A stretch of 64,000 bases of DNA from Phaeosaccion multiseriatum (GCA_965112735.1 OZ218962.1:744001-808000); one strand, 5' to 3'. Shown: positions 51,529 to 60,500, counted from the first letter of the stretch. Numbers and translations are program-made. Notes: generated by a model not told the origin, from the letters alone.

Positions 51529-54500
51529 CTGGTTGTTAAAGCCGGAGATCATCGGGTCATTCTCCACTTGGTCAGCTAGGCATACAACACCGTCCACAGC
51601 GACAGGGGGTGAGGGAGACAAAGAGAGAGAGAGAGAGAGGGGGGGGGGGGGGGGACCGAAACACAGATGGGGGGAGTGAGCGCAGCACACAGACAGGAGA
51701 GTGCAAACAAAGCAGGGGTACGGCGGTCAGCAGCTTCTTGCAAGAAGACACTCGAATCGCAGGCAGTCACTCATCCAGGGGGGGCTCTCACAGGACCCAA
51801 AGAGGGCAGGGCAAGGGGAGGGGCCCGTAGCTAGCAAGAGACAGAGGGACGCATGAGGGTGGGGCAACAAGTCCAGTCGAGTGTCCACCAACTGAACTCC
51901 TTCCTGCTGAGCCCTGTTCCCCTCCCCCTCCCGCCCACCCTCCCACTCGCTTAACCAGTCACTCACCAGCGTCGAAGCTCATGATGAGCGTGAAGGCGCC
52001 GGGCTCATTCTGCAATCTTCGCTGAGCATCAGGGGCTGCGGCGAACACTTGAACGGAGTACTCCACGCCTCCCGTGACAGACACCTCCGACACCGTAGAG
52101 CACGAGGCATCATGATCGACCACACCGGCGGCCACGCACGAGAAAGTGCCATCCGCGGCTGGTGACTCAGTCAAGACGGCGAATTGGGCGACGAGGTCGT
52201 CGTTACCGTCACAAGTGCCCGCAGTGAGCGTGCCGTCGGAGGGGGCGATGAAGCGGTAGGTCACGGTAGGGTCGTCGCTGCCCCCACTACCACATGCCTC
52301 GTTATTCCGGCCGACAGCACCGTAGAGGCTTCCGTCCACGGTCGCGACGAAGTCATCGTTCTCCTCATCGGTAAGAACTACCTCTGCAACCGTACAACCA
52401 AAGAGAGATGGAGTGGAATGAGAGGGGGGGGGGAGCAAGGTCAGACAGTGTTCACCAAGTCGATCAATAGGAGTATGTCATTGTCGGTGTCTCAATCCCA
52501 AGGGCCGCGCAGGGAATGCACAGGGCAGTAGAGCCAACGCAAGTGGCCAAACAGCGAATACGGAAGACAGCGGCAAGCATGGGGCAAATCTAAGCACGTA
52601 ATCACACCGGGCGGAAACCAACAAGCGGTCGAGACAGGATGGATGGATGAGGTCGGGAGGTCAGCTGGATGCTGGTGTATGGGCAGACTAAGGCAGGCGC
52701 AGCCGATGCCAACAAATCAATCCCCCGCGGAACGAAGGAGAGAGGCCCAGCAGAGAAGCTACGATGCCTCAAAGGGACCTTCCTCCCAAACCCCACGCAA
52801 AGTTCTTTCTCACCGCATGCGTCCCCGATGCCGTTGTTACCAATGTCTTCCTGGTTGCCGTTGCTGATGTCCGGGCAGCTGCGAGGAGCACAAGGCAGCA
52901 CGGGGAAACGTGAGAAGACAGTCAGCGCGGCGGTGGGAATTGTTTGTGTCAAGGGACCGCGTCAATCAGTAGGCAGCAACAGGTGGCTGAGGAGAGTGGC
53001 CGGGGGCGGCGTATTTCCATGCAGCCCAGGGCGGCAGCGCCAGGGCAGACACATGTACTGCGCCAGACCAAGTGAAGACCATATGGTGGGGCCACGAGCA
53101 CAAAAGACTGCACTCACTTGTCAATGTGGTTCGCAACCAAGTCATTGTCGTCGTCTGCATCAGGAGGGGCGCGTAAGGCAAGCAAGCGTGGTAGGGCACA
53201 GCCAACGGAAATGGTCACACATACGCGATTAGAGAGAGAGACAGAGAGTTGGGAGGAGCGCAACGCGGTGGGCAGGGGTAAATCGCATGTCATGGCTGGT
53301 GGTGGTTGGTGCTGGCTGGTGGAGGAGGGGAGCAAGTCCAGGTGCGTGTTGGTTTCGCCGCTCTCCTTTTGCCTTGTGCCTCTCGATGTGTCCATCCGTC
53401 CCTCCAAGACGGACAGGAGACAAAAGCCAGACAAACACAGCACGCAGCCGCCGAGGGACACCACACCACCCCCTTGCTGTCACGCCAAGGCCATGCATCA
53501 CCTCCCCTGATTGTTTGCCTCACCACCTTGGCTGCCACCAACAACCAGCAAGGCAAGACGCACAGCACCCTCACACAGGCATCACCGTGGCTGCTTGACT
53601 TACCAGCGCATGGGCTTACAAGAGAAGGGCTTCACTCGGTGGAACCGTCGTACCGGCCAGTCCAAGCGGCAGGGGGGGGGAGGGGGGGGGGCAGTCAACA
53701 ACGTGGAGGCGGGGAAGGCGATATGGATGTCAATACGACAGTCTTTAGCTTCCATGGATGAGCGATGGTGCCACACAGCAACACAACGCAAGGAGTACAG
53801 CCAGGATGACCGCGATGGAGGAAGCAGGAGAAGCTTGCCTAGCTGCGACTCACCAAACGCCATCCGGAGCGACTGCAATGCAGCACGCTTTGTCGGCGGA
53901 GGGGGGTTCTATCGGCCTGCACCGATGCTCCCCAAACACAGCGCAAAGCTGATGAGCGCGCAGAGTGTCCCCATACACAGCGCAAGAGCAGAGAGCGGAA
54001 GCAGGAGGGGCGGGTTTACAGAGGAAGAGGCAGTCCCAAGGGGTGCCAAGAAAAGGGTTAGATGTCTCGGGAGCAGGGTGAGACCATCGTAGTTCAAGCT
54101 CATTACTATGAAGTGGCCCGACATCCTCATCCTCAGCACGCCAGAGTCACAGTCGTCAAAAGAATGAAGGCACCGCTTTGGCTCCACTTCTGTTGTTCCA
54201 CGACGATAGTGGCTGGTTGCGGCGGCCCACTGACTCGTCACCCTCTTTCTCCCCTCGTGCACGCACCTGCAGGTCTCCACAGGCATTTTCTGTCTCGCAT
54301 TTGGCGATGGAGTCCCCGTACAGCTCAGAATCCTGAAAGGGGCACAGTCCAGTCGGGGGAGCAGAGGTTTATAGAGAGTGGGGGTGGGGGGGGCGGGGGG
54401 GGAGGGGGTGGAGGAGGAGGACCTACCCAACAGGAGCTCCCCCCGCTGCAAGTAGCCCTTGACGTGCCATATAGATGCGCGTTCTGCCATCCATGCGTGT

Positions 54501-57500: not shown

Positions 57501-60500
57501 AGATTCGCGTTCTGCCATCCATGCGTGTTTAGGAACAGTTGAATGGGGCGGTGCAACGAAGAACGGGCGGACAGGCAGACAGACACGAGTTTAGTTCAAG
57601 GCTGGCCGGGTAGGCGTTGCACCATACTCCAAACTGCCATTCCAATCTCCTCCTGGTCCAACTCATGATTGGGAAGGAAGGGGCACACGCAAGCACGCCT
57701 CAGAGAAGAGGGTATGGCGAACGAAGGACTTACGTCACAGGAGCGCTCTCCAGTGCAAGTAGCCCTTGACGTGCCCTCAAATATCGCTTCCTGTGGACGG
57801 GGCGATGCAAACGATGTAGAGAGAGGACAGGCATGAGTTACACGCTTCTTAGCAAGGTTAGTCAGGCCCCCCAGAGAGCGACAAGCGAAGGGGTACGTGC
57901 AGCCACCCTTGTCCTTGCAGGACTCACATAACATCCGAAGCTTACGCTGCACGTCACGGGGCAGTTCTGCGCACAGGGGTTCACGTTCACGTCCCAGGAA
58001 GAAGGTGTGTTGAGATAAAGGGCCGTCGTCGCCGTGCAGAACAGACAGCAGGCCGGCCGGGATGCAGCAGGGAGACCAACCAGGCGTACGAGCAGAGAGG
58101 CGGTGCGACGAGAGGGGGAGAGAGACCGAGGCGTGAGACAGCGAACAGTAGCTATCTCCGCAACCGAACCCCCACAATGAGGGGAGGGGAATTCATGGAC
58201 GCTGGACGCGCAGAAAGTACAGGAGGGGACACGCGAGCAAAGAGAGCCAAAAACAGAGACAAACCGTCCCTACTGAACACCTACTGACTGTACCCTCTCC
58301 TGCCACAATACCCTCTCCATGGGTCGCTGCTCTCTCTACTTCTCTGCAGGCGCTGAATGCCATCTAACCACCACACCAAGCCTTGGGATTCGTAAAAGAG
58401 CTTGCCGCAAGAAGGCTTGCTCTTCAAGGTCGGCAAAGAAATGGAGGCGGCAGGAGACTCAATTGTAGCAGCACAAGACAGGCCTTCTGCGCCCACTCAC
58501 CTTGAAGGTCACACCCTGGTGGTACCGGTTCATAACAGAGAGTAGTTTCAGTATTCGTCCGTCCGCACACACGAGCAGCCAGCCAGGAGCCGAGGGGCAG
58601 GCAGGGTGCCATATGGTGCCATATGGACGCGAGGAAGACAAGGGTTGTATAGTCCAGCGGCAGTCGACACGGGACCAGCCAGCCACCGGCAGAGAGGAGA
58701 AGCGAGCCCGGCACGAAGGGAAGGGTCGCGTGACATGCCGAACACGCAAGGAGGGGCAGCGCCACAAGTCAAGGAGGGGAAGGGCAGTAGGGGGGGGTGA
58801 GTCTCGCGTCTTGTGACGTACAATGAGGCTTCGAAGCAAGTATCACACAAGGAATACGTAGCTAGCACTCCGGGCGGAAACACTACCTAACCAACAAGCC
58901 GCAACAGAAACACACAGCAATCCAAGTCACACACGCACACACACACACACACACACACACACACACACACACACACACACACACACACATACACACACAC
59001 ACACACACACACACACACACACACATGGTTCTTGACCGCGAGCGGCAACAAGGCCACCAAGCTGGAGAGATACGCACCCTACAAGATCTGCCGTCACGCG
59101 CGGGGATCCAAGACGGATAGGAGTTTGGATTTGGATCAACGTCGCACATGACGGAAACGGTCGAGTCCGGCTGGCATTCACAAGTCAAGGGGTCATCCGT
59201 GGCCTGCCCGCCTGACACCTCGCCCCCCACAGTAGTGCAGGCCCTGCTGAAGACTGCTCATACCGAAGGGAAGGAGAGGGGGAGGGACGAGAGCACCAGA
59301 GGCATAAATAGAAAGAAATCAGTAGCCAGCGACAGCAATACGAAGAACCACGGGAGGGCAAAGCAGGCAGGCCGGCCTCAGGAAGGAGGAGGAGGCACTG
59401 GAGTGGGAGAGAGAGAATGTTCGGAGTGGGCTCGTCAGTAGGCAGAGCAAGTCACCACAGCCCCCGCCATGCCCGATGGTTCGGGGCCGGCAGGAGCCTC
59501 CTCGTTCCCCTCTCCCCTTTCCCCTCTGAACTCACATGTCTGGGCATCGAGCAAAGGGGTAGTAGTAGTTGTTGTTATTGTTGTTGTAGCGGTAGTAGCA
59601 GTGGCAGTAGCAGTAGCAGTAGCAGCAGCAGTAGCAGTAGTAGTAGTAGTAGTAGTAGTAGTAGTAGTAGTAGTAGTAGTAGTAGTAGTAGTAGTAGTAG
59701 TAGTAGTAGTAGTAGTAGTAGTAGTAGTAGTAGTAGTAGTAGTAGTAGTGTCGTAGTAGTAGTAGTAGTAGTAGTAGTAGTAGTAGTAGTAGTAGTAGTA
59801 GTAGTAGTAGTAGTAGTAGTAGTAGTAGTAGTAGTAGTAGTAGTAGGGCAGGCGGGGAGCAGGATTACTAGCTGCAACAGAGGTGAGTGAACCCGTTCCC
59901 CTCACGCAGCACACAAGCAGCCCAGGCTACATCATCGCGCATCTCGGCTGCCAAAATACCAACCCTCGCTCTCTGAGCCTACACACACACTCGCTTGAAG
60001 ATCTCTATCACTCACCTCTGGAGGAGACGAGACTTGGAGGAGAGCACGACAAAGCAAGTAGCGCGGGAGTGGGTTGGGTATAGGGGGAGCGGGGTGAGGC
60101 GGGCAGAGCAAGTGCGCACTACCAGCAAGCGAACATGTCCAAGGCAGACCGCGTGAAGCAAAGATCGGCACCACCCGCCGCAGGGGGTAGGTAGCGGAAC
60201 AAAAGTCGGAAGAAAAACGCCCCCTCGACTCACCGACACATGTGAAGCCGTCCCCATTAAATCCGTCGTTGCAGGTACAAGTGTAGGAGGCCTCCGTAAG
60301 TTGCTTGCACTGGGCGTTGACGCCGCAGCTAATGGGGCTGTCGGTGCACTGGCCCTCAACTGGGGATAGCAGACAAGCAAGCAGCAAGCAAGAGAGAGGA
60401 AGTGGGGGGGGAGGGGAAGCTCCCAATCAACAACGGAAACGATATGTGACGCGGAAAAGTTCAGAGAACAGGCTTCGAGGAGGAGGAGGAGGAGGACGGC

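Follow-up and report, generated by a model that had tools for sequence, protein, structure and literature searches.

What does a tandem array of roughly 302-bp units encode in Phaeosaccion multiseriatum, and how have its units come to differ from one another? The array lies in the stretch of 64,000 nucleotides analysed here (the window), and an earlier note, made from the sequence alone, had taken it for a set of interchangeable exon cassettes in a candidate receptor. As a whole, the array is fairly probably to be read as 12 diversifying coils of one beta-solenoid within a secreted protein that also carries lectin and EGF domains.

Organization of the exon array

Tandem Repeats Finder reports a single array (54447-57703; period 302, 10.8 copies, 88% matches, 0 indels), which resolves on the minus strand into 12 units, each of about 302 bp and composed of a 57-nt phase-0 exon and an intron of 222-249 nt. 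When the minus strand was scanned with the regular expression CAG + 57 nt + GT[AG][AG]G, exactly 12 sites were returned, with CAG acceptors throughout and GTAAGT (n = 10), GTAAGA (n = 1) or GTAGGT (n = 1) as array intron donors. The division into 57-nt exons and introns with CAG/GTA borders that the earlier note had proposed was therefore exact, and its 12 listed cassette peptides agree letter for letter with the translations of the scanned sites. The window contains 11 matches to a 22-nt exon core against 0 expected, every one within the array, and the repeat pattern is far beyond chance. With up to three mismatches allowed, the core motif occurs nowhere else in the window, all sites being the array's own minus-strand exons; orphan cassettes, for which a search had been suggested, are thus absent from the window by this motif.

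All 12 repeat exons are of constant length and phase 0-0, with one repeat per exon, and the unit of about 302 bp is not a multiple of 3. Since every cassette has 57 nt and phase 0-0, the gain, loss or swap of a coil leaves the reading frame intact. Moreover, unique exons with the same pattern flank the array, as had been claimed (NCPVTCSVSFGCY at 57966-57928 and DSELYGDSIAKCETENACGDLQ at 54332-54267, both with GT-AG borders). The array introns have no Rfam family, no inverted repeats and no unusual folding. The exon array observed earlier is confirmed, and its features on the minus strand are as follows.

58501..58515, minus: candidate 15-nt phase 0-0 microexon GVTFK; the frame is intact with or without it
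57928..57966, minus: unique exon NCPVTCSVSFGCY, 39 nt, phase 0-0; encodes part of a degenerate coil, which probably caps the solenoid at its N-terminus
57734..57790, minus: repeat exon R1 (EAIFEGTSRATCTGERSCD), more divergent than any other copy; the intron upstream is unique
57455..57511, minus: repeat exon R2, from pattern scan and exon chain
57151..57207, minus: repeat exon R3, from pattern scan and exon chain
56850..56906, minus: repeat exon R4, of DVRLHD type, 2 nt from R9
56548..56604, minus: repeat exon R5, from pattern scan and exon chain
56246..56302, minus: repeat exon R6, mosaic: 5' half resembling R12, 3' half resembling R1
55944..56000, minus: repeat exon R7, Gly in place of Cys18
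55640..55696, minus: repeat exon R8, identical to R11
55338..55394, minus: repeat exon R9, from pattern scan
55035..55091, minus: repeat exon R10, from pattern scan and exon chain
54729..54785, minus: repeat exon R11, donor GTAAGA; same sequence as R8
54427..54483, minus: repeat exon R12; donor GTAGGT, followed by a unique 94-nt intron
54484..57733, minus: the 11 introns that separate the repeat exons, homogenised in sequence (222-249 nt; pairwise difference 0.082 on average)
54267..54332, minus: unique exon DSELYGDSIAKCETENACGDLQ, 66 nt, phase 0-0; encodes a degenerate coil in which L4, S8, A10, C12 and C18 are kept and which probably caps the solenoid at its C-terminus

Host gene and predicted protein

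The array belongs to a 24-exon GT-AG chain, which starts with an ATG and a signal peptide and runs for 875 codons with no stop. This chain, together with estimates for random substitution, supports a coding role for the 57-nt segments. If substitutions fell at random at the level observed, the probability that none of the 12 exons acquires a stop would be 0.019, and that of keeping S8, A10, C12 and S17 in all 12 copies would be below 5e-5; in addition, all 6 indel runs of the array fall in introns. Further exons of the gene are listed below.

63059..63194, minus: first coding exon, with ATG, hydrophobic signal-peptide-like N-terminus MTALLQVAVVNCWVLVLLLYPATA and first Cys repeat
62218..62873, minus: a single Cys repeat in each of three phase 1-1 exons (57, 60 and 57 nt)
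61422..61885, minus: C-type lectin exon (PF00059, 32.3 bits, cut-off 22.6, E 1.7e-7)
60587..60995, minus: exon encoding a domain with no Pfam match
60234..60359, minus: EGF exon, phase 1-1 (PF12947, E 5.8e-10)
59536..59871, minus: exon consisting mostly of a (TAC)n/(ACT)n microsatellite, in frame a poly-Tyr and then poly-Thr linker
59078..59253, minus: Cys-rich exon, phase 1 to 0
53909..54229, minus: putative 3' continuation, phase 0, with weak acceptor sites and a hydrophobic tail (ending in GTASSSVNPPLLLPLSALALCMGTLCALISFALCLGSIGAGR, then stop)

The protein contains a C-type lectin domain scoring above the PF00059 gathering score, and 91 of the 100 atlas neighbours of this domain are Lectin_C. 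Because the predicted protein has a signal peptide, a lectin and an EGF domain, it is taken to be extracellular. The putative 3' tail resembles a membrane segment or the signal for a GPI anchor, and the solenoid would lie in the C-terminal half of a secreted mosaic protein, possibly anchored at the surface, in the order signal peptide, four Cys-rich repeats, C-type lectin, unassigned domain, EGF, Tyr/Thr-rich linker, Cys-rich module and solenoid. The label of receptor used in the earlier note goes further than the predicted chain, in which neither a signalling part nor a confirmed membrane part was found. The introns of the three Cys-repeat exons retain residual similarity to one another.

Recombination and diversification of the units

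Among the array units, exon similarity is decoupled from the similarity of the flanking introns. R6 and R9 differ at 15/57 exon sites and at 31/490 intron sites (p = 1.3e-5), and R6 is equally distant (15/57 nt, 26%) from R4, although the introns adjoining R4, R6 and R9 are near-identical; R8 and R11, on the other hand, show 0/57 differences in the exon and 36/490 in the introns. PHI tests gave p < 0.0005 for the units and 0.0015 for the exons, with at least two recombination events within the exon. These results indicate recombination among units, even inside exons, and bear out the cassette swapping that had been suggested, at the DNA level. The array probably grew by tandem duplication of the 302-bp exon and intron unit, with continued reshuffling via unequal exchange or gene conversion, which would have acted inside exons too.

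Exon diversity (0.169) is twofold that of introns (0.082; Mann-Whitney p = 0.011), and no intron window of 57 columns exceeds 0.116, so that the comparison of exon with intron divergence called for in the earlier note came out unequal. Calculated over 19 codons in 11-12 non-independent, recombining copies, pN/pS across the repeat exons is 1.56 (CI 1.07-2.89), the ratio of pN to the intron rate over all codons is 2.26 (CI 1.32-3.54), and that of pS to the intron rate is 1.44 (CI 0.58-2.76), which does not differ detectably from 1. The non-synonymous excess noticed before thus holds against both neutral proxies, pS and introns, and the roughly four synonymous codon differences were located at codons 3, 7, 9 and 14. 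The fixed and variable positions of the 19-aa repeat are likewise as previously given for the 12 copies. In the scaffold codons, 1/7 of the silent third positions varies (diversity 0.026), and five hypervariable codons reach 0.407 with 4-6 states each. The rate of change in these codons, which are predicted to face outward, is about five times that of the introns, in keeping with a surface under diversifying pressure, and the pN ratios of this small sample point to positive selection at the exposed repeat positions. The scaffold A2, L4, T7, S8, A10, C12, T13, S17 and C18 would be held fixed in the proposed mechanism, positions 1, 3, 15, 16 and 19 would be pushed to differ among coils, and positions 5, 6, 9, 11 and 14 less so.

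Concerted evolution might produce a similar pattern with no positive selection, if old exon types were kept apart by purifying selection and conversion homogenised the introns only, whereby the exons would appear fast. The strong recombination signal and the near-identical introns beside R4, R6 and R9, whose exons differ by 26%, fit this scenario, and exon pS, which cannot be told apart statistically from the rate in introns, could be higher. However, old exons should vary at the silent sites of conserved codons, where a single site of seven does so and diversity lies below that of introns; pN/pS exceeds 1, and the differences are concentrated in five codons with several states each. We therefore regard concerted evolution as rather unlikely. 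A recent tandem exon duplication under relaxed drift, with the coils serving as a structural stalk or spacer and the variable positions unconstrained, appears slightly less likely still. Most residues are tolerated at solvent-exposed positions of a solenoid, the sample is small and one coil has lost a cysteine, but unconstrained sites are expected to change at the neutral rate, which pN and above all the hypervariable codons surpass.

Splicing of the cassettes

Cassettes of equal length and phase with near-identical splice sites could also serve a diversity generator at the splicing level, either of the Dscam kind or by cassette skipping, in which transcripts with different cassette subsets yield many isoforms per gene. 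Brown-algal ROCO LRR exon arrays are reported to combine shuffling with alternative splicing (PMC11378527). Nevertheless, inverted repeats of at least 14 nt, as docking- or selector-like complementary segments, number 0 in 53600-58700, and the array introns match no Rfam family and fold no better than shuffles (z = +0.84). Strict one-of-N splicing is excluded by the inability of a lone coil to fold, and we hold splicing-level diversity to be improbable. The public runs covering the locus (X1-X4) are genomic DNA, with even depth over introns and 0 splice joints. We infer that all 12 cassettes are spliced in together.

Predicted fold of the repeat

The repeat is outside named families, as the earlier note had supposed: the best hits of the 19-aa repeat in Pfam (E 0.29) and among PDB sequences (E 0.15) are not significant, its profile has 0 matches in 1.84 billion protein representatives, and a spliced query of 114 aa has 0 matches in protein collections. 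AlphaFold (AF2) models were built from single sequence. The best model of the first segment is all-beta with a 19-residue period (pLDDT 85.7, pTM 0.75; the five models range in pLDDT from 40 to 86), and three strands per repeat are seen in the second segment (pLDDT 64.5). For the better model, VIA gave Z 10.8-8.9 to the TBCC, RP2, CAP, RTX and MpAFP beta-helices, with superpositions of rmsd 2.3-2.9 A over 103-114 residues at a sequence identity of 2-12%. Of the AlphaFold/Foldseek check proposed earlier, the first part thus yielded a periodic model, whereas Foldseek matches were weak (E above 0.3), fungal ice-binding proteins being among them. The models conform to a right-handed parallel beta-helix or solenoid as a fold class, which does not imply homology.

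These predictions agree with the suggestion of one beta-solenoid coil per exon, and also with that of a diversified face, in that the predicted strands alternate between variable positions and conserved ones of inward type. The array would encode 12 successive coils, each of 19 residues, of a right-handed solenoid that is narrow and three-sided and to which the unique flanking exons would supply degenerate cap coils. A C12-C18 disulfide probably braces each coil, R7 having no Cys18. Such a solenoid may have a ligand-binding role, and it likely offers a long, varied binding surface beside the lectin for recognition or adhesion.

An ice-binding or antifreeze-type beta-helix is brought to mind by the C-x5-C brace and T-C-T motif, which recall the Tenebrio antifreeze repeat: T-C-T occurs in five coils with the second Cys six residues further, VIA matches the bacterial antifreeze protein 3p4g (Z 8.9), which has 19 residues per coil, and the fungal proteins above point weakly the same way. 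Ice-binding faces are regular and conserved, however, whereas the face here is hypervariable; the Thr ladder lacks regularity (T11 in 5/12 coils, Ala in 7/12), a Pfam scan at E up to 10 gave no antifreeze family, and the domain context is lectin and EGF, all of which makes this function very improbable. Finally, a non-coding 302-bp satellite in a large intron or intergenic DNA, with segments open by chance, would suit reads of genomic DNA alone, the lack of homologues among 1.84 billion representatives and the unit length, yet it is hardly credible given the coding constraint and 875-codon chain, the alternation of fixed and variable positions along each unit, the same motif in the unique flanking exons and the confident predicted fold (pLDDT 85.7).

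Comparison with known systems

In arthropod Dscam1, alternative exons for one Ig half-domain are chosen by pairing of docking and selector RNA. The array shares with it tandem homologous variable exons, conserved intron segments and an extracellular recognition protein, whereas the exons here are successive coils of one predicted solenoid and complementary intron elements were not found. Lamprey VLRs are assembled somatically from LRR cassettes in flanking donors; they likewise have a solenoid recognition surface diversified by cassette copying on one variable face, but nothing here points to somatic change, since the DNA runs have one array arrangement and 0 joints at multiples of 302.

In snake-venom PLA2 isozymes and conotoxins, exons diverge faster than introns, which is the classic sign of diversifying selection. 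The array likewise diverges in coding sequence beyond its introns, with non-synonymous above synonymous change; paralogous genes are compared in venoms, and here repeats inside one gene with ongoing recombination (for accelerated evolution of venom genes, cf. the habu genome paper, PMC6062510). As for the fold, the model, like the CAP C-terminal, TBCC and RP2 (CARP) helices, is a narrow right-handed solenoid in which each coil takes up about 18-19 residues (Z 10-10.8), but sequence identity is 2-12% and neither Pfam nor PDB sequences give a match. CARP domains lie in the cytosol and do not have the cysteines. The coils of TmAFP, a disulfide-braced insect antifreeze beta-helix, have 12 residues (TCTxSxxCxxAx) and a regular Thr ladder; the C-x5-C spacing and T-C-T motif are shared, and the 19-residue period, the absence of a Pfam antifreeze match at E up to 10 and of a regular ladder are not.

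The earlier note drew a parallel with the LRR-ROCO and NB-ARC-TPR genes of Ectocarpus, which, like their counterparts in brown algae, have one repeat per exon and undergo exon shuffling (Zambounis et al. 2012, PMC3341825; PMC11378527). It stands as regards tandem arrays whose exons, equal in length, each encode one structural repeat and preserve the frame, signs of exon rearrangement and positive selection at exposed repeat positions. It does not extend to the repeat, which there is a 24-aa LRR or TPR in a 72-nt exon and here a 19-aa Cys-containing coil in a 57-nt phase-0 exon with no LRR or TPR Pfam match at E up to 10; nor to the fused ROC-COR GTPase or NB-ARC signalling module, as the predicted 875-aa chain has signal peptide, lectin and EGF only; nor to the inactivated or antisense orphan exons in introns, of which the exon-core search of the window found none. 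We read the array as a new repeat family whose evolution follows the known one-repeat-per-exon mode with exon shuffling, comparable to that of the Ectocarpus LRR and TPR genes.

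Anatomy of the Repeat Array

Tandem Repeats Finder (TRF) detected a single long tandem array at 54447-57703, with a period of 302, 10.8 copies and 88% matches. A minus-strand scan for CAG followed by 57 nt and GT[AG][AG]G returned exactly 12 sites, and a 22-nt exon core matched 11 times in the window, every time within the array, where no match was expected. These three approaches confirm the repeat array proposed in the earlier note, and the translations of all 12 scanned sites are identical to the exon peptides listed there.

Repeat exons found by the splice-site scan, in transcript order
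R1: 57790-57734, minus strand
R2: 57511-57455, minus strand
R3: 57207-57151, minus strand
R4: 56906-56850, minus strand
R5: 56604-56548, minus strand
R6: 56302-56246, minus strand
R7: 56000-55944, minus strand
R8: 55696-55640, minus strand
R9: 55394-55338, minus strand
R10: 55091-55035, minus strand
R11: 54785-54729, minus strand
R12: 54483-54427, minus strand

The introns separating R1-R12 are 222-249 nt long, with GTA/GTAGG donors and CAG acceptors throughout, and since the unit of 302 nt is not divisible by three, the array can code only via splicing. The second cysteine of R7 (55944-56000, minus strand) is replaced by glycine (…VASGS), which leaves the cysteine at place 12 of this coil (C12) without its presumed partner. 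The locus is compact (~3.4 kb) and amplifiable, and it lends itself to direct measurement of how many cassettes are present, in which order they stand and which isoforms are used.

The conserved introns were also considered as possible snoRNA hosts or as carriers of docking sites for splicing. The array introns matched no Rfam family (E up to 1), contained no inverted repeats of at least 14 nt that could serve as docking or selector elements, and folded no better than shuffled sequences (z = +0.84); with all three results null, both roles are unsupported and were rejected. The likeness of the introns would most simply reflect recent duplication and conversion rather than a function of their own, and their anatomy lends no support to Dscam-like mutually exclusive splicing.

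Coding Status and the Gene Chain

The exon status of the 57-nt segments is argued from sequence, namely from coding constraint, indels, flanking exons, the reading-frame chain and the pattern of variation. When the observed differences from the consensus were placed randomly, a stop arose in one or more of the 12 copies in 98% of trials, and the joint survival of the conserved residues S8, A10, C12 and S17 had a probability of P < 5e-5. The six indel runs found across the units are all intronic, which alone is weak (P = 0.29). The pattern of variation across R1-R12 is protein-like. Moreover, unique exons on both sides of the array have phase 0-0 and are degenerate forms of the 19-aa motif: DSELYGDSIAKCETENAC retains L4, S8, A10, C12 and C18, and NCPVTCSVSFGCY retains T11, C12, C18 and Y19. 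The degenerate motif in these unique exons indicates that the layout of one coil per exon predates the recent 302-bp expansion.

When 24 exons were joined at canonical GT-AG borders, 875 codons were read with zero stops. This chain starts with an ATG at 63194, followed by a hydrophobic signal-peptide-like segment, and continues through four Cys-rich repeats, a C-type lectin (Pfam PF00059, 32.3 bits; cut-off 22.6), an unassigned domain, an EGF exon (EGF_3 match, E 5.8e-10), a Tyr/Thr-rich region, a Cys-rich region, the array and a C-terminal cap; its sole microexon, of 15 nt, is dispensable, and microexons of 4, 10 or 11 nt are not required. Sequencing reads over 53650-59600 had even depth through introns and intergenic DNA and contained no GT-AG joints, so that runs X1-X7, with contigs of up to 254 kb, represent genomic DNA. 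The few read joints at the locus are low-depth repeat artefacts, including a 1610-nt skip that is no multiple of 302.

Two further repeats occur in the same gene. Three Cys-repeat exons at 62218-63058 (minus strand; 57, 60 and 57 nt; phase 1-1) carry the motif C-x2-C-P-x-G-T-Y/F; the introns preceding them all end TCCACTCCAG and have more stretches in common, which looks like an older round of exon-plus-intron duplication in the array's own gene. In addition, a (TAC)n/(ACT)n microsatellite (TRF 59559-59846, 96 copies) lies within a frame-keeping exon (59536-59871, minus strand) that translates as a long poly-Tyr followed by a long poly-Thr, so slippage would alter linker length directly.

Three open frames on the minus strand lie near the array. 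A candidate 3' end of the gene at 53909-54229 is a phase-0 open frame reachable from the last solenoid exon, with weak acceptors; it terminates in a hydrophobic tail of ~30 residues, with small residues (GTASSS) ahead, and this tail could be a putative GPI-anchor signal or membrane segment. A 159-aa ORF at 51959-52438 had no Pfam match, and its language-model neighbours (scores 0.95-0.96) are bacterial PPC/galactose-binding-like domains; with the phase 1 implied by its acceptor it makes no direct join to the array, and it may or may not share a gene with the array. The third, an uninterrupted 866-aa ORF at 47863-50463, is unrelated to the array and contains three copies of a motif of ~60 aa (…GAWTA.E..YAAAII.HF..GSLP.PLP.GTSL..F..EKLAC.P.RVY.KF…), with Gln/Glu-rich tracts between the copies.

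Divergence and Probable Selection among the Coils

Accelerated evolution is known to leave exons more divergent than introns, as in venom PLA2 and conotoxins. Such an excess was found in the array, with the reservation that the statistics below come from a small sample of 19 codons in copies that are non-independent and recombining.

Divergence among the repeat units (intervals at 95%, bootstrap over codons and columns)
Exons 2-12, mean pairwise difference: 0.169
Introns, mean pairwise difference: 0.082
57-column intron windows (198), maximum: 0.116
Exon versus intron columns, Mann-Whitney: p = 0.011
pN (Nei-Gojobori): 0.185
pS (Nei-Gojobori): 0.118
pN/pS: 1.56 (1.07-2.89)
pN/intron: 2.26 (1.32-3.54)
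pS/intron: 1.44 (0.58-2.76)

The exon excess could in principle arise if old exon lineages persisted within homogenised introns. The excess is restricted, however, to particular amino-acid positions, which rules against this explanation and favours selection for differences among the coils. The most telling contrast is between the silent third positions of scaffold codons, with a diversity of 0.026 (one of seven variable), and codons 1, 3, 15, 16 and 19, with a nucleotide diversity of 0.407 and 4-6 codon states each.

Recombination within the Array

Across the units, exon similarity is uncoupled from flanking-intron similarity. Between R6 and R9, 15/57 exon sites differ, against just 31/490 in the introns (Fisher p = 1.3e-5), with no more than 2 of the intron differences within the 123 nt immediately upstream of the exon, and R4 and R6 present a similar contrast (p = 3.6e-6); conversely, R8 and R11 are identical in the exon, while their surrounding introns differ at 36/490 sites. 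R6 resembles a mosaic with an R12-type 5' half and an R1-type 3' half, and NANLHD is paired with two distinct 3' halves, as is ADDSCW with two distinct 5' halves. A PHI-type test was significant both for whole units (p < 0.0005) and inside the 57-nt exon (p = 0.0015), where at least two recombination events are required. Taken together, the uncoupled similarity, the PHI results and the mosaics show that the array has been reshuffled at the DNA level. Moreover, units 3-4-5 mirror units 8-9-10, which indicates duplication of a five-unit block.

Predicted Fold of the Repeat

Two AlphaFold2 jobs were run without alignments, and confidence differs among the five models of each. Spliced R2-R7 (114 aa) gave an all-beta model with breaks at 19-residue intervals (mean pLDDT 85.7, pTM 0.75), and R8-R12 with the cap gave a weaker one (pLDDT 64.5) in which each repeat cleanly forms three strands (positions 2-5, 9-14 and 17-19). 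Foldseek matches were weak (E > 0.3) and mostly beta-helices or other beta-rich solenoids. A wide search with VIA returned TBCC (Z 10.8), an RTX block (10.6), RP2 (10.4), the CAP C-terminal domain (10.2) and the antifreeze protein 3p4g with 19 residues per coil (Z 8.9), at rmsd 2.3-2.9 A across 103-114 residues. On these models, each exon probably encodes a single coil of a narrow right-handed beta-solenoid.

In the predicted strands, conserved positions 2, 4; 10, 12; and 17, 18 interleave with variable positions 1, 3, 5; 9, 11; and 19, and positions 15 and 16, which vary most, are located in a turn. Such alternation is that of a constant core under a diversified outer surface; side-chain orientation is taken from the strand pattern, and the C-x5-C spacing suggests a C12-C18 disulfide. 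The structural and evolutionary proposals of the earlier note, a beta-solenoid subject to exon shuffling, are largely borne out, and the repeat offers a small new solenoid scaffold with its variable and fixed positions mapped.

Relatives and Comparison with Known Systems

Neither the Pfam families (best E 0.29) nor the PDB sequences (best E 0.15) included a match to the 19-aa repeat. A 12-repeat profile returned 0 hits among 1.84 billion representative proteins, with 11 of its 30 positions intron-derived and distant relatives therefore missable, and the 114-aa spliced query returned 0 hits in a word-indexed collection in which the candidates were proteins of 63-200 aa. A metagenome scan with the exon core found seven contigs, each sharing just a 22-29-nt seed, and these were dismissed as chance hits. 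The coil resembles that of Tenebrio antifreeze protein in its T-C-T and C-x5-C features. Its period, however, is 19 rather than 12, its Thr residues are irregularly placed and it is hypervariable, all of which argues against an ice-binding role. The feature is real and cleanly defined, and represents a new repeat family in a known evolutionary mode.

To our knowledge, algal recognition molecules are almost unknown, and the sole diversifying system proposed in algae is an intracellular one, based on the shuffling of LRR/TPR exons in brown algae. The locus might belong to a set of exon-plus-intron cassette arrays that form, genome-wide, a variable algal surface-recognition repertoire, with cassettes exchanged between coils (perhaps also between loci) in DNA and variably included in RNA, although we consider this very unlikely. 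If true, solenoid surfaces would be specific to individuals or cells, and the system would be an algal counterpart of Dscam/VLR-type diversification that uses a Cys-braced beta-solenoid repeat not described before.

The closest parallel is provided by the LRR and TPR exons of Ectocarpus and other brown algae, which undergo exon shuffling (PMC3341825, PMC11378527). There as at the present locus, each symmetric exon encodes a single repeat, the repeats have been rearranged among themselves, and exposed residues bear signs of positive selection. The present locus differs in using another repeat type, in lacking a signalling module and orphan exons, and in encoding an extracellular protein that carries lectin and EGF domains. 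The brown-algal mode of symmetric one-repeat exons, cassette recombination and excess amino-acid change on the exposed face is found here in an extracellular lectin-bearing protein, carried by a repeat without detectable relatives, and if further arrays in the genome behave alike, it would constitute a general route to variable surface proteins in this lineage.
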